64,000 nt of DNA. It comes from Penicillus capitatus (taxonomy: Eukaryota; Plantae; Chlorophyta). Each line of letters opens with the position of its first letter. Positions within the stretch are counted from its first letter, which is position 1. Positions 1-25,926 of this stretch are shown one piece after another. Under the pieces are notes generated by a model. That model was given only the letters and a program-made list of their open reading frames with translations, was not told the origin of the DNA and ran no database searches. The translations under genes were made by a program, and so were the position numbers. The DNA lies in the NCBI GenBank assembly GCA_965649825.1, contig OZ287703.1, forward strand, positions 801,722 through 865,721, written 5' to 3'.

Positions 1-1
1 C

Positions 2-2860: not shown

Positions 2861-2913
2861 GGCGTATTATATCACTTCTGCATGAATAGAACATTAAGAG
2901 TGTTCATGTTTTC

Positions 2914-3666: not shown

Positions 3667-3882
3667 TGCGCCAGCGGAGGGATTAGACGTCACGTCAACA
3701 ACGGGCTCGTGTCGCGATCTGTCCTGCGATGTTCGCGAAGACCTCTCGTTCGTGTTCGATGCGTCGCGCGACGAAAGCTCGTTGCGCTGGGACGATCTGC
3801 CGTTCAAGGCGTCTCCGTCCAGACAACCGACGAAAGCACCGACTAGTGACAGTAGGACAGGAACGCAAAATGAAGGCGAGAG

Positions 3883-6038: not shown

Positions 6039-6233
6039 CAATAGACCAAACGACGCCCTCCAAGCGACTGTTCTTTTGAACGTCGAATACGTTTTCTTTT
6101 AACAAAAATTGAACAGCAGTGCGCACTGAATTTCGAGGTTGTCAAATGGAAAGAGACATAGCATTGTTATCTAGAACGTTCATGTTGTCACATCTCATTT
6201 TCCGCGTCATTGTACGACGAAGCGACGGGTTCC

Positions 6234-6452
6234 ATGCGTTCAGGCCAGAAGAAGGTCTCGGCTTCTGAACGGTTTATCAAGGCTTTTGGACAAAGCTCAG
6301 CCGATTGCCGTCGCGAGTCTTTGGCGTACGGTCGTTGTGTGTGGTCGCTGGTAAACGACGTCGAAAAAAACAGCTGCGAAAAGGAATTCCGAGCACTGAG
6401 AGCGTGTTTCCGAACAGCGTTGAAGAAAAAACTGGCGGAAACGCGTTCCTGA
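6234..6452 (+). CDS. NDUFAF8: Twin-CX9C mitochondrial complex I assembly factor, NDUFAF8-like
   Basis: ADCRRESLAYGRCV...KNSCEKEFRALRACF has CX9C-CX9C spacing and the AYGRCV / C.KEF.AL..CF motifs. Confidence 0.75.
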   Translation: MRSGQKKVSASERFIKAFGQSSADCRRESLAYGRCVWSLVNDVEKNSCEKEFRALRACFRTALKKKLAETRS

Positions 6453-8618
6453 TGGCGACACCGAACAACACCTTTCAACCGGTGACGCAGTTCTGGAAGG
6501 AGTTTGACCTCGAAGCCCGACGACCACAATATGACGCGCATGGAATGAAGATCATGGAGAACCAGGAGCAGTCCGTGAAGAGACGCCGACAGTTGGCAGA
6601 ATCGACGCAGAGTTTTCGACGCAGTGCCGAATCGAATGTGGTATCGTCGGTCGGCGAGTTGCTGAAGCAATATCAACAGGAGATCGATCGGTTCGAACCC
6701 TTTTCATGTGTGACCTGTCACATCATCCGACGGTTGTGTAGTTTGACGATAAGAGCGAAGTATGGAGAACGTGCGTTCTTGGATGTTTACCATGCGTTGT
6801 ACGAGGCACCAGATCCAGCCGCTGCATTGCAGACGGCAACGGAAATGGTGTCGCGTGTGGCGGAATTGGAGACGGAGATACGGCGTCAAGCTCAGGAACT
6901 CGCCGAGTATTCGGCCGAAAGTGAAGAGATCCGTAATCAAGATGCGATTCTTCGACGACTGGAAGACAAGATCCGAAGCTTGGAGACAGAATTGCTGGCT
7001 AAAGATACGGCACGGGGTGTGATGCGCAAGGTTTCTCCTGGAGACGGCGACGCGAAATGACACGGCTCTGTGGATTAGGAGATCGGAGAGGAACTGGAAG
7101 AAGAGACGAAAGCGCGGGAGGCCGTGATGCAGAGATCGGTGGATGAAGCCAACGGGAAGCTGGAGGCAATGCGGAAACTCCATCAATCGTCGCAAGATCA
7201 ACTCCTCCTCATGCAGGCAACGGATCTCGATCTACGATCGCGCACCATGAGATTGTGATGTGCAGTCTAAAAACGAAGAAATGAAGGCAAGATACACTGC
7301 CGAGCTAGAAATGGCGGCGGCCGAAGTCGAGAAGTCGCACAACAAAGTACTAGAATTGGAGAATGCGAAAGAGAAAACGGTATCCAGTCCGAGGCCATCG
7401 ACCACAGATCCTGGTGAGGTCGCAGGTCGTGCACGTGATGTTGGATGATTATGGTGTGCAGAAAAGGAGAGGCTGGTTCGAGAGCTGCAGTCCTGTGTGG
7501 AAGCGCAACAGCAGACGATGTCAGCGCTGAGGGAGGAACTGGAATCGCTGAGAGAAAAGCACGCGGTCTTTGTCTCTGACGCCTCCACTGCTGCCGATTC
7601 GCTCAGAGCCACACTGAGAGAGAAAGATGCTCTCGTGCATTCTTTGGAGGAAGAATTGAACAAGCGCCCAACGGCAGAGACGATGGAGGCATTGGAAGCA
7701 CAGCTCAGGATCTTCCAGACGGTGGAGTACAATGCCGACGTCGACAATGGCGAAAGTGCACCTGCCGCCGATTCCGTCGAGAATCTGCTGATCAAGAAGA
7801 ACAAACACCTGGAGCATCAACTCACCCTCGAAAAACTGAAACAGGTGGCCGTTCGTTGAGGGACGGCTGGGTTATCATGTGTACGATGTGACGTTTAGGA
7901 GGATCTGCAGCAGCAGCTGTCGAATCACCAGGCTCTGCTGTCCAGATCGCAGCATCAGCTGGAGGCACAGCGCGACTTGGTGGCACGGCTGGAAGAGGAT
8001 CTGGTCACGGTGCAGAACACCACCACCGCTGCCGTCAAGCCCACCTCCAGCGCGTCCGATCTGGACGAGGTTGCCGCGGAGGGCAGTGGAGATTCCAGTG
8101 TCGTCGCCGTTCTCCGCAATCAGCGGGATCGCTTCCGCAAGCGGACCCAGGAACTCGAGGCAAAGCTCAACGATGCCGAAAAGAGGAACCGCCAGCTCAA
8201 GGCAGAGGCAGAGACGGCGGCGGCGGACAACGTGTCCCTCGTCGAGCGACTGCACTACCTGCAGGGCTACAAGAAAGACAGAGCAGCGTCCAAGATCGAC
8301 GTCGAAAGCGGACTGGCCGCCGAGCAGAAGTACAGCAAGGCGTACGAAGACCGCATGAATCCCTTCCAAGAGTTCCGCGGACGGCAGCGGGAGCGTCGCC
8401 GCAAGGAGCTCAACCTGGTCGATCGCACGGTTCTCATCGTCGGCGATCTGGTCTTCGGTTACAAATACGCGCGTCTCTTTCTCTGTCTCTACATCATGAT
8501 ACTGCACGTGCTGGTCATGACGATGCTGGGGTCCATGTCGGATCGACACCATCGGCAGACGGTGGACGGCGTCGAGCAGTTCTGTCTGGAGCACGGATTC
8601 CTACCGAAGCTGCCCTAG
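6452..8618 (+). CDS. CASP: Golgin CASP (CUX1 alternative product/Coy1 family), multi-exon
   Basis: N-term VTQFWKEFDLE..ENQEQSVKRRRQLAEST, long coiled coil, NQRDRFRKR, YEDRMNPFQEF and C-terminal TM YARLFLCLYIMILHVLV. Confidence 0.92.
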
Positions 8619-9543
8619 GACGCCGCACGCGGCGCCTTCGTGATGTTCCACCGACGACGTAGAGACACGAGGGACTCCTGCATCAGAAGCGTGAATGGAG
8701 CGAGACGCGTTGATGTGACACTTCGAAGTGATGTTCGTAGTAGATGGACATGAGATCGGTGGCATTGAATCCGGTTCTCACGGCCCAGGGCAACATCCGT
8801 GTAAAGAACCACGCTCTCTGCCGTTCTTTGATCACCAGAGGGGACAGCAGAGCCGCGAAGATGGCGTTTGGAAGTCCCGTCTGCACATCGCGCTATTCTC
8901 GCGCCTTGCGTCTTTCGATCGCGCACCTGAATGCCTTCGACAGTCTTGACGGCGACCTCGCCGGACATGTCGGTCGGGCAGCCCAGAAGAACGTGCCACA
9001 GGTCGTGCACCTGACGATAGCTGCACAGCGATGTCGCGCGCCTCGTCTGAAAAGGGGAGAGGACCGCGCGGCGACGTAGGCGATCTCCGGGTCGTCGATG
9101 AATCGCACGGGAGGGCGTTCGTCTGGACGCAAACGTCGCCGGTCCATGAACTCGGCATAGGCAGCGCCAAAGCTCTCGGCCTCCATGCCTCGACACCTTT
9201 CCAGTGTTGCGCGCTGCAGCATTGCCGAACAGACAGTTGTGGCGGGCAGGCATCGGGGAACAGACAGACCGTGATCTGCGGCTTCTCTTCCAGGATCCGC
9301 CGCGCCCTCTGGCTGTTTTGCATGGACGAGTGGATCTGACGGAATGCCGCTTCGCCCAGCGTCTCGTTGCTCGCCGCGACGAGGTCGGCACGGTAAGGAC
9401 TAAGCGAAGATCGAACACGTGGCCGCTCCGCTTCGCGTGAGATGGCGATACTTGAGGGCCGAGCCGACGCCGGACCCGACGGCGACGAGAACCTTCTGCC
9501 ACGGCCGAAGGGGACAGTGCGTCAGGTAACGCGATTTCGACAT
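8615..9543 (-). CDS. COQ4: Ubiquinone biosynthesis protein COQ4, copy 1
   Basis: [76 protein letters not shown] and [11 protein letters not shown]. Confidence 0.93.
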
Positions 9544-9550
9544 CCTTTCG

Positions 9551-10024
9551 TTAAAACGCGTCGTTGACGTCTTTCCCACAAAACAGCCGGGAAGACTCCT
9601 TCACCGGCCGCGCAGAGACGGCGACGTCACGTCGCTTCAGATTCTCCCGAATCAACGAGGCGTAAGACGAGGCGATGGCGCGGTACAGCCTTTCCTCGGC
9701 GCTCCTCGCCCGCACGGACAGATCTCGCAGGAGAATCTGCGCGTGAGCAGCCACCTGAGATTCTCACTCTTGACGCCAGTGCGTCGATGGGACGTTTGTT
9801 GACGCACCTGATGACACCAATGATTCCCGAGAGCTTCGGTTTCCCACAGAGAGCTCTCGACCGCTCGACTGAGACTCGGATCCGTGGCGTCTGGGTCGTA
9901 GATGTCGTAAGTAACGACGCCATTCTGTGAGCGAGGCCCGAATGGACGGACGCGATGAGCGGTCAAGCAGGACATTGCATGAGGGGTGGCGTCGCACGAG
10001 GTTGTGCATGAAAGTGATGCACAC
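9551..10024 (-). pseudogene. NOC4: 5'-truncated NOC4 fragment in repeat copy 1
   Basis: Only the last exons are present (DPSLSRAVESSLWETEAL). Cut at 10024, with a 4-bp insertion near 9905 relative to the intact copy. Confidence 0.85.
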
Positions 10025-10151
10025 TGCTATGTTATTTTGATAGATGATGCGACTGTGGCCTTAAGAGCATGAAAACATTAGAGCATTTGCCATTGTAACG
10101 AACTTTCTCAGTTTGTTTGTCTCGGTCCTCACATTGCATGGTTTCGGAGCG
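10025..10151 (+). mobile_element. Short LTR (TG..CA, 10025-10138) followed by a primer-binding site TGGTTTCGGAGCG (10139-10151)
   Basis: tgctatg...cattgca termini and an internal tgtaa. The same 13-mer PBS follows the TRIM 5' LTR at 36492. Confidence 0.6.
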
Positions 10152-10299
10152 TCAAGCTCCTCCGTTACAGTTCTCTCTGTTTCGTGCGTGCGGTTTGACG
10201 CTTTGTGCGTTTTCGCGTCGTTCGCTTCGTGCTTTCGACGAGACCTGTTTTGGGCCCACCAATTGAAAGAATTTTTACTAACCATTGTACTCGACAAGA

Positions 10300-10603
10300 T
10301 GAACAGACGATTTCAAGGAAGAAGATATGATGGTCATACACAAAGAGTGGAAACTCGAACGTATGCAGTGGTTGAGACATGCGTTTCAATTCTGAGATAC
10401 GAAGTCGCTGAAGTGGTCGGCTCACAGCTATATGGCTGCATTGTGCAATGCGTTGACAATTGTGATATCCAGTTTTCTTTGCTGCCTGTGTCCGTCTTCG
10501 ATGAAATCCAAGACACCATAAGCGATATGAAAAGAACAGTCGATAAGCTCACATAGGACGTTAAAGCAGCACGAGGATCAGTGAATCACGAAGATGTGGA
10601 GAT
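10300..10603 (+). mobile_element. Truncated gag-like ORF fragment
   Basis: ILRYEVAEVVGSQLYG...DIQFSLLPVS..DEIQDTI.DMKRTVDKLT is nearly identical to the 31254-32006 ORF and lies downstream of LTR+PBS. Confidence 0.6.
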
Positions 10604-10699
10604 AATAATAAAATTGGTCTTTCTTACAACCCCTTTTTAAGTTAAACATCAGAGGCGCGACTATTCGGTACAAGACCAACTATTAGCAAGGCACAAGGC

Positions 10700-12640
10700 T
10701 ATCAATGACTAGGCAGGGGAGAGGTGAAGGATAGAAACCTCGGATAATTTGGGCAAACCGGTTGCTATGCGTGCTATCAAGTGTTTCTGTGAAGGGTCCT
10801 TGAGTCCGCCTCGAGTCATCTGGCGAGGAGTCGCTCCTGGCGCGCCAACCGTCCCTGTGGCGCCACGCCAGCAGAACATCACTGGAGCGCGCATGACGAG
10901 AGACGTGACGATGTGTGACGATGTGACCCTCCTAATCCGGGGTATTTAAACGGACCTGCGCTATTGCATCTGTCTAGCTATGTAAATAGCATTGCCGACG
11001 GAGTTCCCTGCGCGACTCGCCATCCGGTCCGGACTCGGCCGACAGGTCGACGTTCACAGTTTCCACGAGGAGCCCCAGTGATGCGAACGAAGGGACGTAT
11101 CGGGAGGACCATATAGTCCAGCGTAGCGTACGGAGTCTTGTACTCTCCAAGGAGCGTCTCGTAGAGTGTCTTCGAAATGAAGACATTCAGGTTCTTGCTC
11201 GGAATCCATTCTGAGAGGGGCTGTCCTGAGGGATCGCGTTTCCTGCGATTCAGTCGGTGCGGGGCCGCAAAGCGTGTTTCTTGAAGGTCTGCCGCTGTAA
11301 GATTCCATCGGGATGCATTCTGTGTTGCGATTGCTTCGATGGCTGCTTCCGGGTCAATGTCCGTGTCGACGTCGCTGATGACTACGGGGATCTTGTTTTT
11401 CGTGGGCGAGAGGTACGGATTGTTGACCGTGAAAGTGCCGATACCGTCCAACTCCAGGTCCTATGTGGCTCCGGCGCATTCCAGACAGCGATCAAGCGCT
11501 TTCTCGAATTTCTGGAGAAGTTCTGCCCGGATTTATACGTAGAATCTGCCGCCATGGTCAGATCGGATGTCTTCGACATATTCCTTCAGGTTCGTGATTT
11601 TCAGCGTTCGTTCCAGACTAATGTCAAGCTGGCGGAATGACGGGCGATCTCCCTTCTTCAATGTCACTAGGCAGAACTGGAAGCTACGCTCATCGCATCG
11701 GAGCTGGGCCTTGATCGCTTGTGTTTGCTTGCGAATCTCGCAGGCTTAGGCGATTCGTTACTTTTGGCCGGGGGTTATAGCTGTGGGCGCTTAATAGGGC
11801 GCCGCCTTGCGGGGCATCGCGGGATGAGCGGGTCGTTGAGGCTGGCGATGGACTGGCCTCTGCAGTAGGGTACGGAGGCGGGGCAGTCGGGACGAATGAG
11901 ACTAGGGTTCGGCAAAACCTGATACAGGTTTGCAGCTCGTCAAGGCGATTGGCGGAATGTTGCATGAGCTTTCGGGTTGCTAGTTCGTCAGCCGGGATTG
12001 TTTCTTTGAGGGACTCTAGAGTACTCTGCACATTGACTAAATCCTGGGAAACGTTGTCAGAAGGTAGAGGAAGTCCATGTTTGTTGATAGCGGACGATCT
12101 GTGAGAGACAGGACGACGCTTCAGATTTCGGGTTATAGTACGGGGCCTTCGGGGACCAGCAGTAACGAATCTCGCGCGCTCGTGAAAGTGGACGAGGAGC
12201 TGCTCGCTATCTCGGTGTTCGTGAGCTGACAGGCAGGCTCGGATCTTTTACGCCAGTTGCATTTGGTCACCGGCGGTGGCAACCTAGGAGGGGCACGCCT
12301 TGGGGGCGTTGTCCGCAACCAAGAGTTCGTCCTTGCTCATCGCATCGAGCAACTCGCTTGACCGGCGAAGGTCGCGCCGGTATCGGACCGCGTGTGCGGC
12401 CTGGGCAACCGTCGTGCTCGGTACGGTGCCGGAGCCCCCGGCTGTGAACCGGACGGCTGCATCGTTCTTGTTGTGTGCGTGCGGACACCGATGTTCGGCA
12501 ATGGTTTTTGGCAGGCGGAAGGGTAGTGTCATACAGAGAATTGGTAGGGGCCTATGAAGTCTGCTGAACGCCACCAAGAGAGCAGGGATTGCGTGCGTCT
12601 TACAATACAGAACAACTCGTCGATCGACGCAAGATAGCAA
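10700..12640 (-). mobile_element. Degenerate non-LTR retrotransposon ORF1 (gag-like)
   Basis: Frameshifted frames give KIPVVISDVDTDIDPEAAIEAIATQN...LDYMVLPIRPFV, typical of the LINE ORF1 region before the zinc knuckle; multiple stops. Confidence 0.55.
10788..11058 (+). mobile_element. Solo LTR-like element, family A (271 bp)
   Basis: TGTGA...TCACA ends and 5-bp TSD gtttc (10783-10787, 11059-11063). TATA-like tatttaaa and tgtaa are internal. The 3' part is homologous to 33480-33755. Confidence 0.8.
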
Positions 12641-12686
12641 GGAGCTTGGTCATTATGCTCAGCGCGGCTATCGACGACCGGTCTCC

Positions 12687-12812
12687 GTGGGTGAACGAGT
12701 AGCTCTTAGCCCCTTGTACCCCATCCCTAAGAAAGATGGAAGCTACGGATTCACCGACGACTTCTGTTGGTTGAACGCTTACTTAAAGAAATATAGAATG
12801 ACCCAGATTGAC
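12687..12812 (+). mobile_element. Small Ty3/gypsy- or DIRS-type reverse transcriptase relic
   Basis: SPLYPIPKKDGSYGFTDDFCWLNAYLK resembles the SP.F.VPKKDG..R...D.R.LN motif. Confidence 0.55.
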
Positions 12813-12821
12813 GTTTGGATG

Positions 12822-12986
12822 TGTCGCGTTATCGACGAACGACGCGATTACGACGAAGGCGTATCGTTTAACAAAGACTGTTTTAACGTTTATTTGTTCC
12901 AATTATATACGCGTCAAACGCATACGAACGTCATATTAACGCGTCTCAGTGACAGCTGTACGATGGTGGAGAGCTGTTTACTGATA
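12822..12986 (-). repeat. Diverged copy of the TRIM LTR (family B); a partial copy lies at 13464-13521
   Basis: acgacgaaggcgtatcgtttaacaaagact and gacagctgtacgatggtggagagctgtttactgat are the reverse complement of motifs in the 36360/37230 LTRs. Confidence 0.65.
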
Positions 12987-14812
12987 ATCAGATCTCTGCG
13001 TTTTAAGGTCATTTGCGTTCCTAACATTCGGACTGTGAGAGAACGACATGTCGCATGTGGTGCACGGTTCCCCTCAGCTATCCGGCTTGACCTTATTGCC
13101 GCCGCCGCTAATCCCATCAACACGTCTTGGCCCTCGGCCATTGACACAAGAAAGCGTGTCCTGATAAAGGTGATGGGATGAAATCAGATGTCAGACGGAA
13201 TCGATTACAAGACGAACAAATATACGCCTGACCGTTTCCTTTACATTGTCAAGAACTAGTGCATCGAGTCCATTGGATCTGACATCATACTTAAACCATA
13301 ATGACGACAATAAATAACTAGTATCTGTTCCTTTCCCGCTGCCCGCGTGGACGAACGATGTTCAGCGTCCGACAGAAGAGACGAGATCGTTACGGCAACT
13401 TCTTGCCCGCCGACACCCTTGCCCTGCCTCCGAACCGAAACCCGCCGCCGCATTGCCGACCGTTGTCGTGTTTGTCGCTGAAACGCGCTAACGACGAAGG
13501 CGTATCGTTTAACAAAGACTATTCATAACTAATGTTCTGAATTTATGCATTCATTGCAATGCTTGGGCAAACGTGTTCCCCCAACTCAAAGGACCGTTTT
13601 TTGCGCCGTTCTCCCACAACTCCACCTTCTCGTGGTAAATCCGGCCCCTCAACAGTCGACGCGCGCCTGCATTAGCCCATTCTTTCTTGATCGAACCTTT
13701 TCGTGATTCGCCTTCGCCGTTTTACCTGTAACGCATGCAAATCGTGTGAAAGGCCCATGTTACATAAAATGGGGGGGTAGTGAGTCTAGAACGCTCTCTA
13801 GTCTTTAAGATCGTTTTGCCCACTTGCGTTTGAACGCCACGAACACGAGCCGCCCGTTATAGCATCATGCTCGTCGATTTTCGGTGGTTTGGATGAGTTG
13901 AAATTGAGAACATTCTAGATGTCCGGTGTTTTGTGATGGACTTGAAGGGAAAAGAAGTGAAATAAAGTCACATCAAGCTGCCAGCAGGGCGTCTCATAAC
14001 GTCAGCATGACGCAAACCTCACGTCATGCAGATTGGCATAAAAATCGGGGTTTTATATCGGACATTAGCCTTTTAAGAAACTTTACGACGTTTGCGTTTT
14101 TTTTTTTGCTCGTATCAGTACTAAGAGAGGAAGAGTGTGTATAGGCATAGTTTTCATAAGAACTTTTGAGCAAATTTTCTTAACTTGCATACAAGAGACC
14201 TGGACGATTACGATGATCGAGCGTGGGTGCATATCATATGGAAGTCGCACTTGAGACTTTGGGGTTGTTTACCTACTTACGGGTAGCAGTATGTCCAATA
14301 TTCCAATGCGTACTTTAAGGAATAACTGCAACAGCATACTTCCACAAGCGGTGAGTATATGATAAACAAACGAAGAGAAAACAGTTTGATAGAGAGATTT
14401 TAATTATTATAGATTCGCATTTGTTAATGCCAGATTAAGTTTGGATGAATGATACCTTGGACTTTTCCAAACCGAAGATGGTTTTAGTTAGTAACACGGT
14501 TTCCATATTGAATTCTCTTGCATATCTGGAGCACTTTCGTTGCAGACGCAATTAAATGCTGCCTTAAATTGTCCATCTTGTTCGAATACATCAAGATCAT
14601 GACACGACAGTCCAAACAAACCATTCACTTCGACAGAATTCACAAAGTACGAGACAATAATAACATGTGTTTACGGTTTATTAACAAAGTAGGATAGAGA
14701 GAATCAATGACTTAATGCTTCCGTGACGGAGATTTTAAATGGCAAATCCAAAAAGAAAAAACAGAATCATATCCACGGTCAACTTCCGCACATGGATATA
14801 CGAGGTTGTGCT

Positions 14813-17800
14813 TTAATCGACGTACTCTTTTATTTCAAGATCATGACGCAATCCGGGAAATTTATCATCGAACTCCCGTTGCAAATAATCGAGATACAAG
14901 TCAACATCTTCTTTCTTCCATCTTCCGACTTCTTGCGAAGATACAGTATGGAAGACAAGGCGAATCATTTCATCACTTCCAGCGGGATCGAGTGTGAATG
15001 GGTTTTGAACGAAACACAACGAAAAGCCACTTATGTACATTGGGAGAAATGAGATTGCCAGCGAAATCGTTTCTTCAGGCTTTATGCTTTTCAATGCGTT
15101 TCTAGCACGGTCGCGCACGGGCCAATAATCGTCGACGCACTTCATCGCCAACGTCAACGGAAGGCCACTAGAGTGCTGTGGAGACGCCTCAAGGATGCAA
15201 CAAATGGCCTCCACCGCGACAAGCCGCACGTCAACGTATTTAGCATCGCATTTGTCCAACAACATCGACTTAACTTTACTAAAGTGCTGCGGCGCCGCCA
15301 CGACGACGCGACAGATGGCTTCAGTCAGTGTTTTACGCACGTGCGCGTATATGTCGTCGTGCCACCTTGCCAGCGTCGTCAGATGCTCGCCAGCGTGATG
15401 CGGCGCCGCCGCGACGACGCGACCGATGGCTTCAATCGTATCCCGGCGTACGTTCCAGTTTTCATCGCTGCATCCTTTCGTCAGCGTCGGCAGAACCTCG
15501 TCAGCATGCTGTGGAGCTGCCGCGACAATGCGACCAATGGCTTTTGTCGCCGCTAGACGCACTTCCGAGTCATCGTCACACTTTTTCACCAACATCGGTA
15601 GAAACTCGCCGGCGTGCTGCGGAGCTGCCGCGACAATGCGACCAATGGCTTTTGTCGCCGCCAGACGCACGGCCGAGTCATCGTCACCGAACCAACTCGC
15701 AAGCGTCCGGAGAACCTCGTTAGCGTGCTGCGGCGCCGCTGCGGCGACATCAGCGATTGCCTCAATAGCAGCTCGACACGCTGACCTTCGATTGTCGTCA
15801 TGCCAACTCTCTAGCGTCAACTGAATGTCACTGGCGTTCTGCGGCGCCTCCGCGACGACACGGACGATGGCCTCCTTCGCCACTCGACATACAACCGTGT
15901 TTTGGTCGCCACATCTTATTGCCAGCGTCGGCAGACACTCGCCAGCGTGATGCGGCGCCGCCGCGACGACGTGACCGATGGTCCTTATCGCCGCCCGGCG
16001 TATGTCGCAATTTTTTTCACTGCACCTCTTCGCAAGCGCCGGAATAACTTCGCCGGCATGCTGCGGAGCTGCCGCAACGATGCGTTCAATGGATTCAATC
16101 GCCGCCAGACGCACATCCAAGTCATCGTCTACGCAACCCATCGCAAGCGCTGGAATAACCTCGCCGGCGTGCTGTGGAGCTGCCGTAACGATGCGTCCAA
16201 TGGCTCTAATCGCTATTGAACGCATATCTGTGTTTTCGTCGACACATCCCTCTGTGAGCATCGGTAGAACCTCGCCTACATGTTGCGGCGCTTCTGCGAC
16301 GACGTTGGCGATGGCTCCAATTGCCGCCTGACAGATGTACAAGTTTTCGTCGACGCACTCTTTCGTTAGCTTCTGCAGAACCTCGTCAGCGTGCTGCGGA
16401 TCTGCAGCGACGATGCGTCCAATGGCTTCAATCGCCGCCAGACGCACATCCAAGTCATCGACGCAACCCTCCGCAAGCGTCGGTAGAACCTCGCCGGCGT
16501 GCTGCGGAGCTGCCGCGACAATGCGACCAATGGCTTTTGTCGCCGCTTGACGCACTTCCGAGTCATCGTCACACTTTTTCACCAACATCGGTAGAAACTC
16601 GCCGGCGTGCCGCGGAGCTGCCGCGACAATGCGACCAATGGCTTTTGTCGCCGCCAGACGCACGGCCGAGTCATCGTCACCGAACCAACTCGCAAGCGTC
16701 GGTAGAACCTCGCCGGCGTGCTGCGGTGTTTCTGCGACGACGTTGGTGATTGCTCCAATCGCCGCCTGACGAATGTGTAAGTTTTTGTCGACGCAACCCT
16801 TCGCAAGCGTCGGAAAAACTTCGCTGGCGTACTTCGGCGTTGCCACGACGACGCGGTCGATGGCTTCTATCGCCGCCAGACGCACGGTCGAGTCATCGTC
16901 ACCGAACCAATTCGCAAGCGTCCGGAGAACCTCGTTAGCGTGCTGCGGCGCCGCTGCGGCGACATCAGCGATTGCCTCTATAGCAGCTCGACACGCTGAC
17001 CTTCGATTGTCGTCATGCCAACTCTCTAGCGTCAACTGAATGTCACTGGCGTTCTGCGGCGCCTCCGCGACGACACGGACGATGGCCTCCTTCGCCACTC
17101 GACATACAACCGTGTTTTGCTCGCCGCACATTGTTGCCAGCGTCGGCAGATGCTCGCCAGCGTGATGCGGTGCCGCCGCGACGACGCGACCGATGGCTTC
17201 AATCGTATCCCGGCGTACGTTCCAGTTTTCATCGCTGCATCCCTTCGTCAGCGTCGGCAGAACCTCGTCAGCATGCTGCGGAGCTGCCGCGACAATGCGA
17301 CCAATGGCTTTTGTCGCCGCTAGACGCACTTCCGATTTCTTGTCGCCGCGCCACTTTGTCAGCGTCGACAAAATCTCGCCAGCGTGCTGCGGCACGTGTG
17401 TTGCGATAGATTCGAACCTCTTTATGCGCTCCTCTGGCTTGCACCAACCGTCGACTTGATTGGTTAACTTTGAGACAAATTGGGCCATTTCATGAATGTG
17501 CTTGGGAGAGTGCCTTTCGAGCTTGAAGAAATCGGTAGTTTTGGCCATCTCCATCCATTTTAAGTCGTCCTTCTGTGCTAGCAATTTCTTCACTTCGTCG
17601 ATGGTCTCATTGAGAACTCGGGGAAATGCCTCCAAAACGCAAGACAAATGTTGGAATTCTTTTATCACGATTTCACGAATTAGAACATCGTTGACAGTAC
17701 GCCCGAGGAGTTGGCAAGCGGCGTTAACGAGTTCGGTTGCTTGTTTGTCGTTCAAAAGATTCTCCAAAACGTCTTTATCTGTCTCTTCTATGGTTGCCTC

Positions 17801-20781
17801 GAGAACTCGCAGCCTTAAGAAAAAGTGTTGCACTCCAAGAACTTCAACTGGTTGCTCATCAATAATCGAGAGCATTTCTTGCAATGCGTCTTTTCCATGG
17901 CCATTTGCAAATGCGTGCATGGCGAAGTACATTGTCAAGTCATGCTTCTGATTGTATTTTCCTTCTTGAATGAAAGTTAGTACTCGTCTTTCATCTTCCG
18001 ATCCTTTGTTTTTTAGGCTATTGGCGATAAATCTTCCCGCAAAGTACTCTTGAAACGTAAGGTGAGGAAACTGATATTGTTTTCCCTCCAAGACAAGTAG
18101 GAGAAATCCAGTTTCTTTAAAGATCTTCGTTGTATTTGTGGATGTTGCACAAACTTCAACGATTCGTTCTTCGATGAGTATTTGTCCATTCCGAATTGCC
18201 TTGAAAGCGATTTCTTCTAAATCTCTGAAAACGACGTTCTTGTCCGCTTCTTTCGCTTCGGGCTTTTCTTTGAATCTCTTCCACACGTAATTTGTCATGT
18301 TCTTGTAGATCCGAAACATGCTCGCCCTATTTCCTCTATATTCAATAGAGGTGCCGTGTTCTTTCGACAAAGAACAGAGAATGTGCGCCGTCACCGGAGT
18401 GTGTGCGGTGTCCCACATACCCTGATCTTGTTGCAACGAACGGATGAGGCTCGAAGCTTCATTTTGTTGCAGTTCTTTGTTTATGTAGTTCTTGAGCTGT
18501 TGGTCATTGAATCCAAGACACTCGAACTTATTGTCGACTCTTTTCTCTATCCCTTGAAGATTGTATGGTCGCGTGAGCACCAGAAGTTTGCATTCACCCT
18601 TCTCCACCCCGGAAAGGAGATCTCTGGCATCGTCATCGGCTTCGTCTAATCCGTCAAACACTAGCAATGTGCTAAACGTATCGAGATCATCTTTTATTTG
18701 AGTCTTCAACTCCTCAAATTCGTCATCGCTTCCTTTTTGCTTGAAACACATCTGCGCGATCACTTCTTCAAGCGCTTGTCCTCTTGTCCCTTTAGTTTTT
18801 GCAACGTTTAAACCTCTTATCGGAACCACGTAAATGGCTTCGAGCTCTTGCAGCATCTCTCCCATTGCCCATTTGTGTGCAATGGCTTTGCTCAAGCAAG
18901 TCTTCCCCGAACCAGGATTTCCATAGAGAAGTACTTTTCGGATTTCGCTTTTGCCGACGCCAGCTTCCAACGATCTCGGTTTAAACAAGTCTTCGATCGA
19001 AATGGGTATTGTGACCCTTCTCTTTCGTTCACAATATTCTTCCGGATCGTCCCTTTCCTGGGCCGAAGAACTTTCCCCTTCCGTTTCTTCTTCTTCGTCT
19101 TTGCGTTGTACTCCTCTGTTGTCAACTTCCCTTTTCTCGACGATCTCTTCGTACACGACAACGTGGTGCTCCATATCTTTCACGTGTCTACGGACTTCTG
19201 ATTCAAACAAAGAAGGCACCTGTAACATGAATACGAGTAAAGTTCGATTGAAACGGTATCACAGGTAATCACCGTAGCAAAGTTGTCGTGGAGGTACATT
19301 TCCTTGAGGTCTTCGATGTTAGAACAAATAGTGTACGGATGCAGATATCCAACAGTTGCCCCTGTTTTGATGAATACATCATCTCGATCTTTATTCGTAT
19401 CTCCGTGGCGTCGCATCTGAAGCTTTTCTTCAATGGTATTGTCATTCAACCACGTTGTTAACGTCCCTCTGGCACCTTCATCGCATGATTGTTCTATCTT
19501 TTCGAGAACTTCAGCTATTTCTTCGTTTTGTTCCCCCACTGAGTGCATTATGTGCAAAGAGTCTAAAATCTCGGTAAGGATGTCTCCATCGTGAATCCAG
19601 TTTTCCGAGATCGCTTGATTTGTTGCCAATTCAACTAGCTTCGTCGTCGCTTCTTTGCGGCTATGTTTACTGGAGCTCTTGTCGCTTGCCAACAAGCGCA
19701 TTTCTTGAACGATGCCAAACCTCAAGGCTTTTTGGTGATTTTCTCTCGTCGTCTTATGTTGCCCTTCCATCGCCGTGTCGTAAGCTAGTGCAAGAAGTTT
19801 GCACTTTTTATCTTCTTTAAGCGCGCCAAACCTTGCCGCCGTTAGAATCTGAAGTATGTCATACCACTCTTGCTCCGATACTCCCACTCTGGCAATTGCT
19901 GCTCGACCCTTTCTGTATGCGTCCTCGATTGATGTGGGATCGATATCTCCGCCGGCCAATCTTCTGAGAAGGTTGATGACATGCATTCCGCCGTAAAGCC
20001 CAGATGCGGTATATCTTGCCGCTCTTGTTAAGCGAGATGGCTCGTCTTCGATTTCTAAGCGCTCGACGGCTTGCTGAAGAAGCTCGAAGTGAAAGAAAAC
20101 AGGGTAATGCAGAACGGATAGCTTCATCGCCTCTCTCTTTTTTGCGATTGTTTGGCGAAGCAGTTTTTTCTCTTCCTCGAGCGTATAACCACGACCGATG
20201 ATTTGCAAAAGGAAAAAGACCTGATGGATGCAGAGGAACGTTATTTCGTATTTTGTAAAGTTATGCTTGGTTAGCCTGAGTTCCGAAGACAGACTGGATA
20301 GTAGCTTCGTAGCAAGGACAAGCAATTGTGCTGGGTCATATACGGTCGCATCCACCCAGGTGAGTGTGGTGTACAGAGCCTTTGCGACGTTCGTGTCGAG
20401 AAATTCGTCAGGACGGATCAGAGAACCGATGTCATACACCAGTTTTCTCAGAACTTCGGCATCTTGTTCGGAGACGTAGGCAATCTTTGCCAGTTCTGCG
20501 TAGTCCAGGACGGCTGTTGGTCTGAGGAAGTCTTCCTTTGCTTCGCCGTATTTGAACAGCCAGTCGAGGAGAACGGTTCGCTCATTCGCATCCGTCGTGG
20601 CGTTGTACGCCGCGACAAGCGACTTTGTGCTAACGATGTCATACTTCTTCGCGACAGCGCGCAGAAGCTTTGCCGCATTTCTTCGTTGAACGTTGGAATC
20701 TGGTTGGCGGGATGTTCCACCACTTTCCGACGCGGACGGTCCTCCGGCGGACGATTCGTCGCCCAGAGCTTGAGTTTGCAT
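14813..20781 (-). CDS. NLR-like STAND protein 1: ~500-aa helical N-domain, NACHT, ~21 HEAT-like repeats (~1971 aa, one 53-bp intron at 19220-19272)
   Basis: Walker A LLYGNPGSGKT, Walker B LLVFDGLDE, FPHLTFQEYFAG, then 36-37-aa repeats. The phase-0 GT-AG intron joins HDNFAT to VPSLFE. Confidence 0.9.
15085..17395 (-). repeat. Coding tandem array of ~21 HEAT-like units (108-111 bp)
   Basis: Consensus AGEVLPTLA.gCvDd.s.VR.AAi.AIgRiVAAAPQH, with near-identical multi-unit tracts. Confidence 0.92.
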
Positions 20782-21819
20782 GTTCGGTAACCTACACACG
20801 AAGCACTATAACGTCCAGTCGGAAAGTATTAGCGCAGCAAACCTGTTGCTTCAAAGCTGTCGGCGGAAAGTTCACAGAAGAATTCGCAATGGATACGCTA
20901 AATCGGATGAACTGATATTCGTCTAAACCGTAATGATAACGCTGCAGATTCGCGGACATCGCCGAAAAGTTTCGAACCTGGTTTCCGTCTGGCCGATTCC
21001 GGGACGGCTCCATAGAGTTTTTTGCAGAGTTCTTCTTTGTTTTCGGTGTTTCCACCCGTGTACGTGGAGCATAACGTGTTTCTTCGCGTTGCCTAGACCA
21101 CGCAGAAACGTTCGCATAGACGATTCGCAGTGGGAGCAACCTGACATTTGTTATCAAGGTCTTCTGTGGATTGAACATGACCGTCGTTCTTCTGTCATGG
21201 GTCATTTGACTGCGGCTATGACGGTTGGAGCGGAAGACTGTCAGGTGCCTGCTAAATAACAACTTTGACGTGTTTCAGTTGACGGATCGGGAAACTTTTA
21301 GAAATAGAGTCTCCGATCAAAGTATCCGGTTTTGTAGATCAGATTCGCAGTAACATTGTTCCAATACTTAACATTTAAAACAGTAAGAGAATGAATGCAT
21401 CATCCTTCGTAGAGCAGATGGAGAAAAACGGGGGACGGTCGCGTGTCGGATAGCAGTTCGAAATAAATGGTTCGGTGCCTACCAACATCGCGGTCCCGGA
21501 AGATGTTTTTGTTCGTCAAGGTTACCAGTGTGATAACGTACAATCTTCAGGTTTTATGATTCTTTGCCATTGCAGATGTCGGATGAATCGATCCTTTTAA
21601 CAATACAACAAGTGATCCCCATGACAACACGACAGGTTATGATTTTATGAAAGAGGGAAAATCTACGCATGAGCTGGCTGCAATTACAGTGAAATGAAAG
21701 CTTGTCGAATTTCGAGGCGGATAAAAAGCATGGAAATCTAAATAATCCATCGTTCACTGTGATAGTATTTATCTGTGCAGATTGAGTTGTAGGAAATAAA
21801 CTGCTCCTCTTGAGCAATG

Positions 21820-23033
21820 CAGATCCAGGTGAGGTCGCAGGTCGTGCACGTGATGTTGGATGACTATGGTGTGTAGAAAAGGAGAGGCAGGTTCGAGAGC
21901 TGCAGTCCTGTGTGGAAGCGCAACAGCAGACGATGTCAGCGCTGAGGGAGGAACTGGAATCGCTGAGAGAAAAGCACGCGGTCTTTGTCTCTGACGCCTC
22001 CACTGCTGCCGATTCGCTCAGAGCCACACTGAGAGAGAAAGATGCTCTCGTGCATTCTTTGGAGGAAGAATTGAACAAGCGCCCAACGGCAGAGACGATG
22101 GAGGCATTGGAAGCACAGCTCAGGATCTTCCAGACGGTGGAGTACAATGCCGACGTCGACAATGGCGAAAGTGCACCTGCCGCCGATTCCGTCGAGAATC
22201 TGCTGATCAAGAAGAACAAACACCTGGAGCATCAACTCACCCTCGAAAAACTGAAACAGGTGGCCGTTCGTTGAGGGACGGCTGGGTTATCATGTGTACG
22301 ATGTGACGTTTAGGAGGATCTGCAGCAGCAGCTGTCGAATCACCAGGCTCTGCTGTCCAGATCGCAGCATCAGCTGGAGGCACAGCGCGACTTGGTGGCA
22401 CGGCTGGAAGAGGATCTGGTCACGGTGCAGAACACCACCACCGCTGCCGTCAAGCCCACCTCCAGCGCGTCCGATCTGGACGAGGTTGCCGCGGAGGGCA
22501 GTGGAGATTCCAGTGTCGTCGCCGTTCTCCGCAATCAGCGGGATCGCTTCCGCAAGCGGACCCAGGAACTCGAGGCAAAGCTCAACGATGCCGAAAAGAG
22601 GAACCGCCAGCTCAAGGCAGAGGCAGAGACGGCGGCGGCGGACAACGTGTCCCTCGTCGAGCGACTGCACTACCTGCAGGGCTACAAGAAAGACAGAGCA
22701 GCGTCCAAGATCGACGTCGAAAGCGGACTGGCCGCCGAGCAGAAGTACAGCAAGGCGTACGAAGACCGCATGAATCCCTTCCAAGAGTTCCGCGGACGGC
22801 AGCGAGAGCGTCGCCGCAAGGAGCTCAACCTGGTCGATCGCACGGTTCTCATCGTCGGCGATCTGGTCTTCGGTTACAAATACGCACGTCTCTTTCTCTG
22901 TCTCTACATCATGATACTGCACGTGCTGGTCATGACGATGCTGGGGTCCATGTCGGATCGACACCATCGGCAGACGGTGGACGGCGTCGAGCAGTTCTGT
23001 CTGGAGCACGGGTTCCTACCGAAGCTGCCCTAG
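21820..23033 (+). pseudogene. CASP: Orphan 3' half of CASP lacking its 5' exons
   Basis: Translations equal those of 7497-7859 and 7977-8618, but the sequence upstream of 21820 is unrelated. Confidence 0.8.
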
Positions 23034-23958
23034 GACGCCGCACGCGGCGCCTTCGTGATGTTCCACCGACGACGTAGAGACACGAGGGACTCCTGCATCA
23101 GAAGCGTGAATGGAGTGAGACGCGTTGATGTGACACTTCGAAGTGATGTTCGTAGTAGATGGACATGAGATCGGTGGCATTGAATCCGGTTCTCACGGCC
23201 CAGGGCAACATCCGTGTAAAGAACCACGCTCTCTGCCGTTCTTTGATCACCAGAGGGGACAGCAGAGCCGCGAAGATGGCGTTTGGCAGTCCCGTCTGCA
23301 CATCGCGCTGTTCTCGCGCCTTGCGTCTTTCGATCGCGCACCTGGATGCCTTCGACAGTCTTGACGGCGACCTCGCCGGACATGTCGGTCGAGCAGCCCA
23401 GAAGAACGTGCCACAGGTCGTGCACCTGACGATAGCTGCACAGCGATGTCGCGCGCCTCGTCTGAAAGAGGGAGAGGACCGCGCGGCGACGTAGGCGATC
23501 TCCGGGTCGTCGATGAATCGCACGGGAGGGCGTTCGTCTGGACGCAAACGTCGCCGGTCCATGAACTCGGCATAGGCAGCGCCAAAGCTCTCGGCCTCCA
23601 TGCCTCGACACCTTTCCAGCGTTGCGCGCTGCAGCATTGCCGAACAGACAGTTGTGGCGGGCAGACATCGGGGAACAGACAGACCGTGATCTGCGGCTTC
23701 TCTTCCAGGATCCGCCGCGCCCTCTGGCTGTTTTGCATGGACGAGTGGATCTGACGGAATGCCGCTTCGCCCAGCGTCTCGTTGCTCGCCGCGACGAGGT
23801 CGGCACGGTAAGGACTAAGCGAAGATCGAACACGTGGCCTCTCCGCTTCGCGTGAGATGGCGATACTTGAGGGCCGAGCCGACGCCGGACCCGACGGCGA
23901 CGAGAACCTTCTGCCACGGCCGAAGGGGACAGTGCGTCAGGTAACGCGATTTCGACAT
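23030..23958 (-). CDS. COQ4: Ubiquinone biosynthesis protein COQ4, copy 2
   Basis: Intact duplicate of 8615-9543. One visible replacement (LGCPT to LGCST); most other exon changes are synonymous. Confidence 0.9.
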
Positions 23959-23965
23959 CCTTTCG

Positions 23966-25874
23966 TTAAAACGCGTCGTCGACGTCTTTCCCACAAAACA
24001 GTCGGGAGGACTCCTTCACCGGCCGCGCAGAGACGGCGACGTCACGTCGCTTCAGATTCTCCCGAATCAACGAGGCGTAAGACGAGGCGATGGCGCGGTC
24101 CAGTCTTTCCTCGGCGCTCCTCGCCCGCACGGACAGATCTCGCAGGAGAATCTGCGCGTGAGCAGCCACCTGAGATTCTCACTCTTGACGCCAGTGCGTC
24201 GATGGGACGTTTGTTGACGCACCTGATGACACCAATGATTCCCGAGAGCTTCGGTTTCCCACAGAGAGCTCTCTACCGCTCGACTGAGACTCGGATCCGT
24301 GGCGTCTGGGTCGCAGATATCGTAACGACGCCATTCTGTGAGCGAGGCCCGAATGGACGGACGCGATGAGCGGTCAAGCAGGACGTTGCACGAGGGATGG
24401 CGTCGCACGAGGTTGTGCATGAAAGTGATGCACACGAGCGCGCCGGACGGCGACATCCTCAGCGCCAATCGCCCGAATCTCTTCACGAACGCCGCCACCG
24501 TGTACGCAGGCACCAAATCTGCACAGACAGCTTCCAGCGATGCCAAGACTCAGCACAGGTGACGGACCGGATTTCAGGAAAGTGTCCAGCAGACGGAAGA
24601 ATCTCGCACGGTCTTGGCGGTGGAAAACGTCCTCGGTGAGCAAGGTGTAGATGCGTCGATAGAATTCCGGATACTCCAGGTTGTGCTCCGTCATCAGGAT
24701 GAAGATCCCGTGCAGGGCAAGCAGTCCACAGGGCCCTCCGAGGTCGAGACGTCGCGTCAAGAGATCGCTGAGCGTCAACGGCGACGACAGATGCGGCATG
24801 ATCTCGAACGGAAGCTTTGCCATGACATCCTCCAGCAATGCCTCTGGCAAATCGAGAGCCAGAAAGCGATTCCACGCTAAACTGCAGACAAAAGCTCAGT
24901 GTGCAGCGACAGTCAGTGGCAGTGGTGGTGATGCTCGACCTGAATTGCTTCTGCTGTTCTTTTGGATCGACCCAGCAATAGCCTCGCGTTCCGGCGACCT
25001 GCAGCGCTCTCTTTCGCTTTCGGTGACACGGATATCCCGTTGCCGCGGCGACGGCGATTCCTGCCTTGACAGATGGGTGTTGGCCGTCTCGTTTCTAAAG
25101 GGATACCTGCCTGCTTCGGACGCAGCGATCCACGATCTGAGTGTCCCATCGTCCATGCGACAATCGTCTAGCGTCTTGGGCAGTAGATCAAGGCACACTA
25201 GACATGCAGTATCCTCCACGTCGCGTCATACAAAGATATATCTACTCTTTATGTTCTCGGCGATCGGGAGCTGCCCTTCGGCCGTCTCAGCACAGATCTT
25301 GGCCACGGCTTTGTGGGTGTAGTACCGAACGTCTGCATAGCGACTGTACTTCGAGCACAGTACCTCCAACGCCTGCAAACGCCACAGGAATCATAACTGT
25401 CGTGCCCTGCATTGCGGACTTGGGACGCCGATGCAGACGCGAGAAGAATCCGCAATGCCGAGTAGAACACGTCGTTGTTGAACTCGCCAAGTCGATCGGT
25501 TGACACCTGTCGCATGATCGCCTCGAACAGCGTCACCTGGATATCCATCCAGCTCGCCGCCCCCGACATCCCATGCCAATCATTACCTGCGTCGCCGTTT
25601 CAGCAGCAATATTCAAACCATCCTCGAGTTTCTGTCGAAAGATCTTTCGATTGTCGCGGAGCCATCGCGCATACAGCGCTTCGGGGCCCGTGCCATCGAC
25701 GGAGAGGGCATGCGGGTCAGCGCATTCGGAGGCGAAGAACTTTTCCAGATGCACCACTGCGTTACGGAGCTCTTTTTCGCGCATCTCGTCCATTCCGCTC
25801 AGCAGCAGCCCGACATTGTTCGCGTTGCCGATCGGATCCGCTTCGAGTTCGGCACAGAGCTGAGCGACATCCAT
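23966..25874 (-). CDS. NOC4: Nucleolar complex protein 4 (CBF/Mak21 domain), multi-exon
   Basis: PLTLSDLLT..GGPCGLLALHGIFILMTEHNLEYPEFYRRIYTLL, RARFFRLLDTFLKS, VAAFVKRFGRLAL, NLVRRHPSC and ESSLWE. Confidence 0.92.
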
Positions 25875-25926
25875 CCTCTTTGCCGGAGTACCGTATCTGT
25901 CGTATTTCGACCTCGATCGACGACAC

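Follow-up and report, generated by a model that had tools for sequence, protein, structure and literature searches.

An NLR gene between directly repeated copies of a CASP-COQ4-NOC4 segment in Penicillus capitatus

The window analysed, a stretch of 64,000 nucleotides from contig OZ287703.1 of Penicillus capitatus, contains a pair of direct repeats, R1 (positions 7405-10024) and R2 (21820-24435), that self-BLAST joins in a single alignment of 2620 columns with 98.78% identity, the mismatches being 28 substitutions and one 4-bp indel. A match of 2.6 kb at 98.8% cannot be due to chance. Each copy holds the 3' half of CASP, COQ4 and the 3' end of NOC4. The repeat spacing is 14,415 bp, and the insert of 11,795 bp between the copies (10025-21819) carries an NLR gene of the NACHT-HEAT type. 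Self-BLAST and the Pfam gene content bear out the order CASP(5')-R-NLR insert-R-NOC4(5') put forward in the original prediction. The similarity of R1 and R2 stops sharply at both inner junctions, J1 (10024/10025), which joins a NOC4 exon to the insert, and J2 (21819/21820), which joins the insert to CASP 9 nt upstream of a CASP 5' splice site. Both are derived joins, J1 being blunt-looking, and similarity across them is absent on the sides that can be compared, microhomology being judged on one side only.

CASP, a golgin (CUX1 alternative product, Coy1-like), has its sole complete copy at 6450-8618 on the forward strand, with Pfam matches to CUX1_N in 6269-7057 (E 4e-29) and to CASP_C in 7899-8615 (E 6e-49). 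Its 5' part, up to position 7404, is unique and its 3' part lies within R1. ORF comparison, together with Pfam on the R1 equivalent, identifies a CASP 3' fragment in R2 (21820-23033, forward strand) that is devoid of the 5' exons and of a promoter of its own. The sole complete NOC4 (24070-25976, reverse strand; N-terminal ORF P0089) has its 3' end in R2 and matches positions 2-163 of Pfam CBF/Mak21 over two exon ORFs. A complete CASP is thus read only through R1 and a complete NOC4 only through R2. COQ4 is found twice on the reverse strand, at 8618-9543 and 23033-23958. Copy 1, supported by Pfam Coq4 on three exon frames and by a gene model, has six exons and five short introns with intact reading frame and splice sites; copy 2 is intact as well according to its gene model. 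The prediction that CASP and NOC4 are each intact once, that both COQ4 copies are intact, and that an NLR gene has been placed within a housekeeping cluster whose essential genes are all unbroken is correct.

The NOC4 fragment of R1 (9655-10024, reverse strand) corresponds to part of the last exon only and is a pseudogene relic. Its CBF/Mak21 match ends at a 4-bp insertion (9907-9910) that codon comparison identifies as a frameshift, the frame being kept in R2. The frameshift in the R1/R2 pair is confined to this truncated fragment and lies 114 bp from J1. The two COQ4 copies differ in their coding sequence by one nonsynonymous and three synonymous changes and in their introns by six, so that the differences are mainly intronic (6 in about 240 nt versus 4 in about 686 nt of coding sequence, p = 0.02). 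Constraint still acts on both COQ4 copies. This pattern of decay, with a frameshift in the NOC4 relic and mostly intronic changes in COQ4, fits a real paralogy of R1 and R2.

The insert is composed of three parts. The left part (10025-14487) is retroelement debris with no intact gene and no counterpart in a sister species; it includes a gag-like fragment (10377-10603) 89% identical, in inverted orientation, to 31747-31973, and a segment (10807-11058) 78% similar to 33506-33755, which adjoins an RT. The central part (14488-21374, reverse strand) is the conserved segment with the NLR gene, NLR1, and includes its native flanks, about 330 bp on the 3' side and about 570 bp on the 5' side. The right end (21375-21819, 445 bp) has no match in the sister species or elsewhere in the window. 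The coding sequence of NLR1 runs from 20781 to 14816 on the reverse strand with one short intron near 19183-19258, and encodes an N-terminal domain of about 530 aa followed by NACHT and 19 HEAT units. The HEAT array (15284-17392) counts 19.1 units of 111 bp (37 aa) that are 66% alike. No Pfam family matches the N-terminal domain. Its AlphaFold model (pTM 0.71) is an all-alpha solenoid for which a PDB search gave nothing better than E 2e-3 and TM 0.25.

A paralog, NLR2, is found 22.5 kb away (37662-43492, reverse strand). It is recognised by Pfam, is the older paralog and is orthologous at its 3' end and mTERF-side flank to a gene of the sister species (L005). PF05729 NACHT is matched in both genes (E 5.6e-15 in NLR1, 2.4e-14 in NLR2), and HEAT families match their arrays of 111-bp units with E values down to 1e-52; the nucleotide-binding domain and the C-terminal superstructure-forming repeats of STAND NTPases with a repeat sensor domain are both present. 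The 5' half of NLR1 (19072-20984) is homogenised with NLR2, to which it is 89-96% identical versus 76-86% to either sister gene. The 3' ends and flanks of NLR1 and NLR2 share only 45-53% identity. The 5' halves of the two genes continue to exchange sequence by gene conversion. Leaving NLR2 aside, the closest paralog of the NLR1 N-terminal ORF shows 75% identity. Homogenisation of NLR 5' halves by conversion is seen in the sister species too.

Fungal NLRs, which combine NACHT or NB-ARC with ANK, TPR, WD or HEAT repeats, have highly conserved internal repeats that undergo concerted evolution (Dyrka et al. 2014, PMC4986451). The genes described here share with them the tripartite layout of N-terminal domain, NACHT and HEAT, the fixed-length repeat unit and the exchange of sequence between paralogs. 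The repeats of NLR2 match at 89%, and their number differs between haplotypes (14.4 versus 26.4 units). The genes differ from fungal NLRs in an N-terminal domain with no match to a Pfam family or a solved fold, and in the NLR1 repeats, which are only 66% alike and free of repeat-number polymorphism between haplotypes; in this comparison the fungal thresholds, with repeats above about 85% similarity, apply to proteins and our identities to 111-bp DNA units.

A public ENA contig, ctg340476_38x_l, provides a second haplotype of the locus (haplotype E) with the same architecture, the same J1 and J2, the same 14,415-bp spacing and the same NLR1 HEAT array. Another contig from the same sample, at 34x, matches the window haplotype exactly. 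Beyond 25.7 kb, haplotype E and the window diverge by about 1%, and the NLR2-LRR block shows 3.8% divergence as well as indels. Each of the four R boundaries has, within 8-70 bp, variants specific to R1 or R2 that are common to both haplotypes, which implies that two left and two right R ends exist. The first 25.7 kb are otherwise identical, and 20 of the 21 haplotype differences found there are in the R copies (Fisher p = 2e-13). Since the insert is identical between the two haplotype sequences, which may go back to the same underlying reads, they are not fully independent.

The four R sequences of the two haplotypes form a non-reciprocal mosaic that points to recent gene conversion between R1 and R2. 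In the window, a tract of 915 bp (7475-8389) has no difference between the copies (p < 1e-4; the probability of zero differences is 5e-5 to 3e-7), and haplotype E retains nine private R1 alleles at 7509-8217. By this distribution of alleles, 7475-8389 is an R2-to-R1 conversion tract of the window haplotype only. The R1/R2 differences cluster at both edges of R (p = 0.007 and 0.009). Part of the mosaic could result from mixing of the consensus between repeat copies by the assemblers. The pair resembles, with no essential difference, segmental duplications subject to interlocus gene conversion, which are recognised by non-reciprocal mosaic tracts, by more strongly diverged edges and by variants that the copies of one haplotype have in common. 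The predicted recombination between the R copies is therefore supported as exchange, by non-reciprocal tracts in two haplotypes, and not as crossover, the events seen being conversions only; neither excision nor an empty allele was seen, and with the insert in both haplotype sequences the presence/absence polymorphism has the standing of a prediction.

The sister species is about 84% identical and has an uninterrupted CASP. Its CASP locus has one CASP 3'-COQ4 copy, is collinear with the window across the left boundary of R1 and follows the left flank of R1, not that of R2. The COQ4 adjacent to the sister CASP is a 5'-truncated pseudogene located exactly at the end of synteny, which indicates that the cluster suffered a separate break in that lineage. 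Because of its rearrangement the sister locus is not a clean empty site; several further rearrangements separate the two species, their direction being unpolarised without an outgroup. Introns and edges of R differ by 2-6% between R1 and R2 and by 19-29% from the sister, which indicates a duplication much younger than the species split. The NLR1 segment is orthologous to 8815-15532 of a sister locus (L004) that lies about 92 kb away from CASP. The identity of NLR1 to that gene is 72-75% at the 3' end and flanks, where NLR2 is 71% identical to its own ortholog, and the orthology of the native 5' flank of NLR1 extends out to position 21374. The presence of this ortholog in the region makes NLR1 an old local resident. 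The idea of an imported NLR gene is contradicted by this orthology of its 3' end and both immediate flanks. The locus is a real lineage-specific segmental rearrangement within a fast-rearranging NLR/LRR neighbourhood.

We favour the hypothesis, to which we give an even chance, that a single non-homologous break-repair event inserted the NLR1 segment together with a target duplication on the kb scale. We infer both this one-step mechanism and the provenance of the segment. A nearby chromosome piece of 11.8 kb, made of the pre-existing NLR1, native flanks included, and of retroelement debris amounting to about 4.5 kb, would have been joined into the CASP-COQ4-NOC4 cluster by non-homologous repair. 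The target would have been broken at two places 2,620 bp apart, position 7405 within a CASP exon and position 10024 within the final NOC4 exon, so that the intervening stretch came to lie on both sides of the insert, either because staggered breaks were filled in and end-joined or, equivalently, through two replication template switches. The duplication would be a by-product, preserving CASP in one complete copy (through R1), NOC4 in one (through R2) and COQ4 in two. Afterwards the dispensable NOC4 fragment in R1 would have gained its frameshift, while exchange between R1 and R2 by gene conversion would continue. No donor site for the NLR1 segment came to light, which leaves cut-and-paste and copy-and-loss indistinguishable. 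Of the two mechanisms first proposed, insertion with a giant target duplication comes close to this explanation, whereas nothing specific speaks for integration of a circle.

Staggered breaks have been invoked for kb-scale duplications of unique genes at Drosophila rearrangement breakpoints (Ranz et al. 2007, PMC1885836). The present locus shares with them a kb-scale duplication of ancestrally unique genic sequence flanking the rearranged segment, breakpoints without repeats on the sides that can be compared, broken genes that stay functional and partial copies that decay; the breakpoint reuse of those cases has its parallel in the pseudogenised COQ4 of the sister. The Drosophila events are inversions with an inverted segment and inverted duplicates; here direct duplicates flank an inserted segment, as in a giant target-site duplication. 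Organism and scale also differ, and the mechanism is deduced here without the reconstruction from an outgroup. A stagger of 2.6 kb requires long unwinding, a difficulty acknowledged by the authors of the staggered-break model (PMC1885836). By analogy, the locus would fit staggered-break chemistry applied to an insertion, outside the inversion class.

Integration of the Campbell type is known from yeast integrative plasmids and bacterial suicide vectors, in which direct repeats flank the insert and a crossover reverses the event. Applied to this locus, a circle carrying one R and the insert would have entered the CASP-COQ4-NOC4 cluster by a single homologous crossover, and a crossover between the R copies would excise it. 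The topology is exactly that of such an integrant, with direct repeats and each cut gene rebuilt once; R1 and R2 demonstrably exchange by homology, and the direct-repeat NLR paralogs of the region could loop out circles. We nevertheless hold this origin to be unlikely. Formation of the circle already needs the non-homologous joins J1 and J2, so that the model adds a step and removes none. A circular or mobile origin, as suggested originally, is unsupported: no integrase, transposase, replication or partition gene, terminal repeat, tRNA or ncRNA was found in the insert. No domain came out of the six-frame Pfam scan of 10025-14815 or of Pfam on the larger ORFs of 20795-21274, the tRNA and Rfam searches of the insert were without a match, and the database search showed neither a recent donor nor a free or additional copy of the insert. 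The insert is present in both haplotypes, and all exchanges observed are non-reciprocal conversions, whereas excision followed by reintegration at a different point predicts reciprocal swaps. An independent (foreign, plasmid-like or episomal) origin is at odds with the positional ortholog of 14488-21374 in the sister. The locus thus differs from Campbell-type integrants in that the insert is resident chromosomal DNA, with circle, replicon and foreign DNA unsupported, and in that its repeats exchange by conversion.

Equally improbable is a duplication that predates the split from the sister, with conversion keeping R1 and R2 alike and the sister having lost or rearranged the R1 side. Conversion is clearly active at R, as it is on the NLR 5' halves of both species, and the higher divergence of R1 and R2 at their edges is expected if it acts in the interior. 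Pseudogenisation of the CASP-adjacent COQ4 also requires that a second sister COQ4 exist. Yet even the edges and introns are far closer between R1 and R2 than to the sister, the polarised differences derive both copies from one post-split sequence, and the CASP homology search found no second CASP_C-type ORF on the large contigs of the sister. An R2-like COQ4 and CASP fragment at the 3' flank of the sister NOC4 would make the duplication older and conversion-maintained.

We consider it rather less probable still that R and insert together form a recombination-mobilised NLR cassette with the 2.6-kb R as a homology "attachment site". If so, a crossover between R1 and R2 would loop out the 14.4-kb unit as a circle, whose return by homologous recombination would need no integrase, making presence or absence of an immune-type receptor reversible with CASP, COQ4 and NOC4 never disrupted.

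Slightly less credible again, an assembly artefact would imply that R is single-copy with mis-joined alleles, or that an empty site coexists with an extrachromosomal or tandem R+insert unit. The sample has two haplotypes at similar depth (38x and 34x), the two haplotypes of the sister differ by 0.7%, near the R1/R2 value, and a redundant contig remains in the assembly at the NLR2 repeat array. Against this, J1 and J2 are unique-sequence junctions, which assemblers do not make up, copy-specific variants mark each of the four R boundaries, and the frameshifted NOC4 of R1, if allelic, would leave an essential gene with a null allele. Two assemblies concur on linkage and spacing. The contig names presumably point to a HiFi assembler, in which case typical reads are far longer than the 2.6 kb of R.

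NLRs are known cargo of Starships (Urquhart et al. 2023, PMC10104507), and a multi-kb insert carrying such a gene, with retroelement fragments in its left part, recalls a cargo-carrying transposable element (Starship-like or retroelement-mediated transduction), but we regard this as highly implausible since the insert has no ORF for a captain (DUF3435 tyrosine recombinase), an RT, a transposase or any other recombinase, lacks TIRs, LTRs and poly-A at its ends (10025 and 21819), has a flanking duplication of 2.6 kb of genes instead of a short target-site match, and is single-copy with a positional ortholog of its NLR in the sister.

The locus is not a new kind of genetic element; its value is that of a worked case of NLR-cluster dynamics. 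Under the break-repair hypothesis it is a clean natural example of how an NLR can move in among essential genes without cost, the duplication restoring every gene that was cut and producing duplicons on which gene conversion acts frequently and which could in principle also undergo deletion. Together with the independent break of COQ4 in the sister, it suggests reuse of a fragile site beside a fast-evolving NLR/LRR neighbourhood. The more novel lead may lie in the large NLR family itself, whose N-terminal domain has no known match.

Comparison of the window with itself reveals one long direct repeat, whose left copy (R1, 7405-10024) and right copy (R2, 21820-24435) are 98.78% identical over 2620 columns (28 substitutions and a single 4-bp indel) and enclose an insert of 11,795 bp (10025-21819). 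At all four repeat ends the similarity breaks off abruptly. Pfam matches bear out the gene names given in the original prediction and, together with the self-comparison, the arrangement that it described of two repeats around an insert with an NLR gene. CASP (+ strand) has CUX1_N in its unique 5' part and CASP_C within the repeat, COQ4 (- strand) lies entirely within the repeat, and a last-exon part of NOC4 (CBF/Mak21, - strand) occupies the repeat's right end. The NLR gene of the insert (NLR1, - strand) codes for an N-terminal domain of ~530 aa followed by NACHT and by 19 HEAT units of 37 aa. As had been proposed, CASP is whole solely via R1, NOC4 is whole solely via R2, and COQ4 is doubled; its reconstructed gene model has six exons and introns of 44-54 nt, with reading frames and splice sites intact in both copies. 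These copies differ at 6 positions in ~240 nt of introns and at 4 in ~686 nt of coding sequence, one of the latter being nonsynonymous. RIP-like mutation of the repeat was rejected, since the differences between R1 and R2 are not biased toward C-to-T: 6 are transversions, and the 22 transitions run in both directions.

The CASP locus of a sister species, a relative ~84% identical, was found via a cluster-mate of the CASP_C ORF on two contigs of ERZ26696514 (159x and 173x). They represent two haplotypes that share 99.3% identity with each other and ~84.5% with window positions 1-9344, and in both CASP is unbroken and the CASP 3'-COQ4 stretch is single. The sister sequence matches the left flank of R1 and not that of R2, so that the right join of the insert (J2) is the derived one. 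A homology search with the NOC4 exon has no sister ORF among its matches, no sister sequence falls into the 90% clusters to which the NOC4, Rit1 and mTERF ORFs of the window belong, and the second sister haplotype extends no further toward the NOC4 3' flank.

Two NLR genes are present in the sister neighbourhood. NLR1 has 72-75% sliding identity to one of them (L004) over its 3' end and the flank that follows, while its paralog in the window, NLR2 (37662-43492, - strand), is there 71% identical to the other (L005); NLR1 and NLR2 are unalignable at their 3' ends (45-53%). Orthology of the 3' ends to separate sister genes makes both NLR1 and NLR2 older than the species split. In the 5' halves (19072-20984 versus 41564-43492) paralogs are 87-96% identical within species and genes are 76-86% identical between species, a pattern that shows homogenisation within each species, with concerted evolution over 22-38 kb. 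The native flanks of NLR1 are orthologous to the sister from 14488 to 21374, and the sister ortholog lies ~92 kb from CASP in both haplotypes, beside the LRR block whose window counterpart borders NLR2. NLR1 has therefore long resided in this region and now occupies a new place, rather than having been imported. The collinearity of the insert with 31.7-43.5 kb had made attractive a single 22.5-kb tandem duplication (R, NOC4-Rit1-mTERF, TE and NLR) followed by an 8-kb deletion, a model discarded in view of the ancient divergence between the 3' ends of NLR1 and NLR2 and of their separate sister orthologs.

In introns, the intergenic spacer and the repeat edges R1 and R2 differ by 2-6%, versus 19-29% from the sister, and polarised sites reveal derived changes in R1 and in R2. 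This low divergence and the derived changes in both copies place the duplication of R well after the species split. For the duplication to be older, conversion would have to have wiped its signal even at the edges, which we consider unlikely.

Any model needs two non-homologous joins, of which the left one (J1) falls within an exon of NOC4 and J2 within one of CASP. We give about an even chance to a single break-repair event in which a resident NLR1 segment was joined in. Two breaks 2,620 bp apart would have occurred in the target, the resident NLR1 segment would have been joined between them, and the stretch between the breaks would have been left on both sides of the insert; two replication template switches would be an equivalent route. 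No donor copy is retained, and no homology is visible at the junctions on the sides open to comparison; this tips the balance slightly toward break-and-join. The staggered-break chemistry would be the same as in Drosophila inversions (PMC1885836), but here the event is an insertion and the duplicates are direct; the mode is alike, yet the R pair lacks the inverted orientation that defines the staggered-break class. Campbell-type integration of a circle would give the same end product, but it calls for the same two joins first and then for an extra homologous step, and it has no specific support in the data; we rate it as improbable.

The window molecule (haplotype W) differs from a public ENA contig that carries these proteins (haplotype E; analysis ERZ25074695, ctg340476_38x_l, 944,726 bp). 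Over 39637-44950 W has an exact match (100% identity) in a redundant 5.3-kb, 34x contig from the ENA sample, so both E and W are present in that sample. E has the junctions of W, and the distance between its two CASP_C ORFs, 14,415 bp, is exactly that in the window. W and E differ once in 1-7404 (at 3054), nowhere across the whole insert, 15 times in R1 and 5 times in R2, and outside the R copies and site 3054 they are identical up to 25.7 kb. The concentration of 20 of the 21 differences in the first 25.7 kb inside the 5.2 kb of R (Fisher p = 2e-13) indicates that conversion is frequent relative to mutation. Divergence is ~1% at 25.7-29.1 kb, and collinearity ends at 29,083, consistent with a transposon insertion polymorphism. 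Three other large contigs carry relatives, with >90% identity, of a 190-aa ORF at this break (P0095, 29215-29784, - strand); the ORF probably belongs to a transposon found in one haplotype arrangement only. Further right, the NLR2-LRR block (38034-53295) is 96.2% identical between W and E (3.8% divergence), with 27 indels.

Within the window a stretch of 915 bp (7475-8389) is devoid of any R1/R2 difference (p 5e-5 to 3e-7), and the differences are concentrated at both edges of the repeat (p = 0.007 and 0.009). At 7509-8217 nine private alleles are kept in the R1 of E, where the R1 of W is R2-like: W carries an apparent R2-to-R1 conversion tract of 0.7-0.9 kb. The R1 of E is patchily R2-like at 8597-8977, its R2 is R1-like at 8390-8471 and 9053-9054, and site 8942 varies between haplotypes, yet both copies agree within each. 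None of the exchanges observed in the four-sequence comparison is reciprocal, so that the mosaic is taken to reflect conversions, and cycles of excision and reintegration were rejected as its source. Part of the mosaic could come from assembler consensus mixing between repeat copies. On the sequence evidence, the R pair behaves as ordinary duplicons undergoing interlocus gene conversion. It strikes us as quite improbable that crossover between the R copies mobilises the NLR gene as a homology-driven cassette without an integrase.

That the whole structure is an assembly artefact is quite improbable. The four R sequences have in common copy-specific variants at 4 sites in the first 70 bp and at 15 in the right third, together with the 4-bp indel, and each of the four boundaries has such variants 8-70 bp away, so that R has two true left and two true right ends. 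The only thing that an assembler could have got wrong would be the linkage of these ends across the 2.4-kb interior, on which two assemblies are concordant. Also against an artefact are the intron bias of the COQ4 differences and a frameshift in the NOC4 coding part of R1-type sequence, 114 bp from J1; the latter, expected of a useless fragment and improbable in an essential gene if the copies were alleles, speaks for real paralogy.

The insert has neither a recombinase nor element termini, and a transposon or Starship origin, with the Starship features as defined in PMC10104507, is largely refuted and highly improbable. No integrase, transposase, reverse transcriptase or replication protein came up when 10025-14815 was analysed with Pfam in six frames and when the larger ORFs were scanned, and the insert ends show neither inverted or direct terminal repeats nor poly-A. 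A tRNA/ncRNA integration site was rejected as the window has no tRNA gene or Rfam match. The left 4.5 kb of the insert contain retroelement debris similar to the retroelement beside NLR2. Two 137-bp direct repeats that are 98% identical (36360-36496 and 37230-37366) flank 11 tandem copies of a 28-bp repeat (36606-36915, 97% matches), and short fragments of this unit (36360-37366) occur in the insert at 12822-12883 and 13457-13523. The closest relative of the NLR1 N-terminal ORF is NLR2 at 90%, and the searched data hold no recent donor copy of the insert, the next relative reaching only 75%.

The NLR N-terminal domain, encoded on the - strand at 19183-20781 and 41675-43429, defines a family whose paralogs number at least 70 (proteins P0008-P0078) and lie without exception on large ENA contigs. 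Pfam has no match for this domain. Its AlphaFold model is an all-alpha solenoid (pTM 0.71), and assignment of a fold identity was rejected, there being no significant PDB neighbour (best E 2e-3). The HEAT array of NLR2 (38034-39636) has 14.4 units of 111 bp in W versus 26.4 in E (L010, part of E, 13674-16606), and the redundant 34x contig stops exactly at the edge of this array. In the NLR1 array (15284-17392), which does not vary between the haplotypes, the 19.1 units resemble one another at only 66%. NACHT combined with internally conserved repeats, and a repeat number that differs between haplotypes in NLR2, recall fungal-type NLRs (PMC4986451). A fungal source is a tentative assignment that draws on gene content, introns of ~47 nt and this NLR architecture, the homology searches having no named homolog among their matches. 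The NLR2 linker between N-terminal domain and NACHT contains a tandem repeat with a period of ~39-48 bp (41315-41592; L010 11685-11979), lysine/glutamate-rich when translated, which NLR1 does not have.

The COQ4 beside CASP is a pseudogene in the two sister haplotypes alike (L002 and L003, 10690-11420). It is without exon 1 and the first part of exon 2, homology ending at the equivalent of window position 9344, and what remains is damaged by a 1-bp deletion, by a 4-bp insertion and by a stop codon (TGG to TGA) in the conserved HDxxH motif. Since COQ4 acts in ubiquinone biosynthesis, a functional second copy should exist elsewhere in the sister genome. The position of the pseudogene at a synteny break suggests independent breakage of the same cluster, as predicted by the staggered-break rearrangement model, in which a 5'-truncated duplicate is expected at such a break (PMC1885836). 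An ABC-transporter block (53107-56848) stands in the window between two LRR-gene blocks (44373-59147 region); in the sister the two LRR blocks adjoin each other, and the ABC-transporter block stands inverted at a distance of ~5.5 kb from the pseudogene of COQ4. The differing order implies several block moves between the two species, whose direction is not polarisable from these two species alone. A 230-bp patch at 60630-60856 is 78% identical to L002 11448-11680, beside the sister COQ4 pseudogene; being isolated and oriented as in the sister, it is unreliable as an anchor for a simple inversion and was rejected as such. A conserved reading frame is visible in this patch on the - strand.
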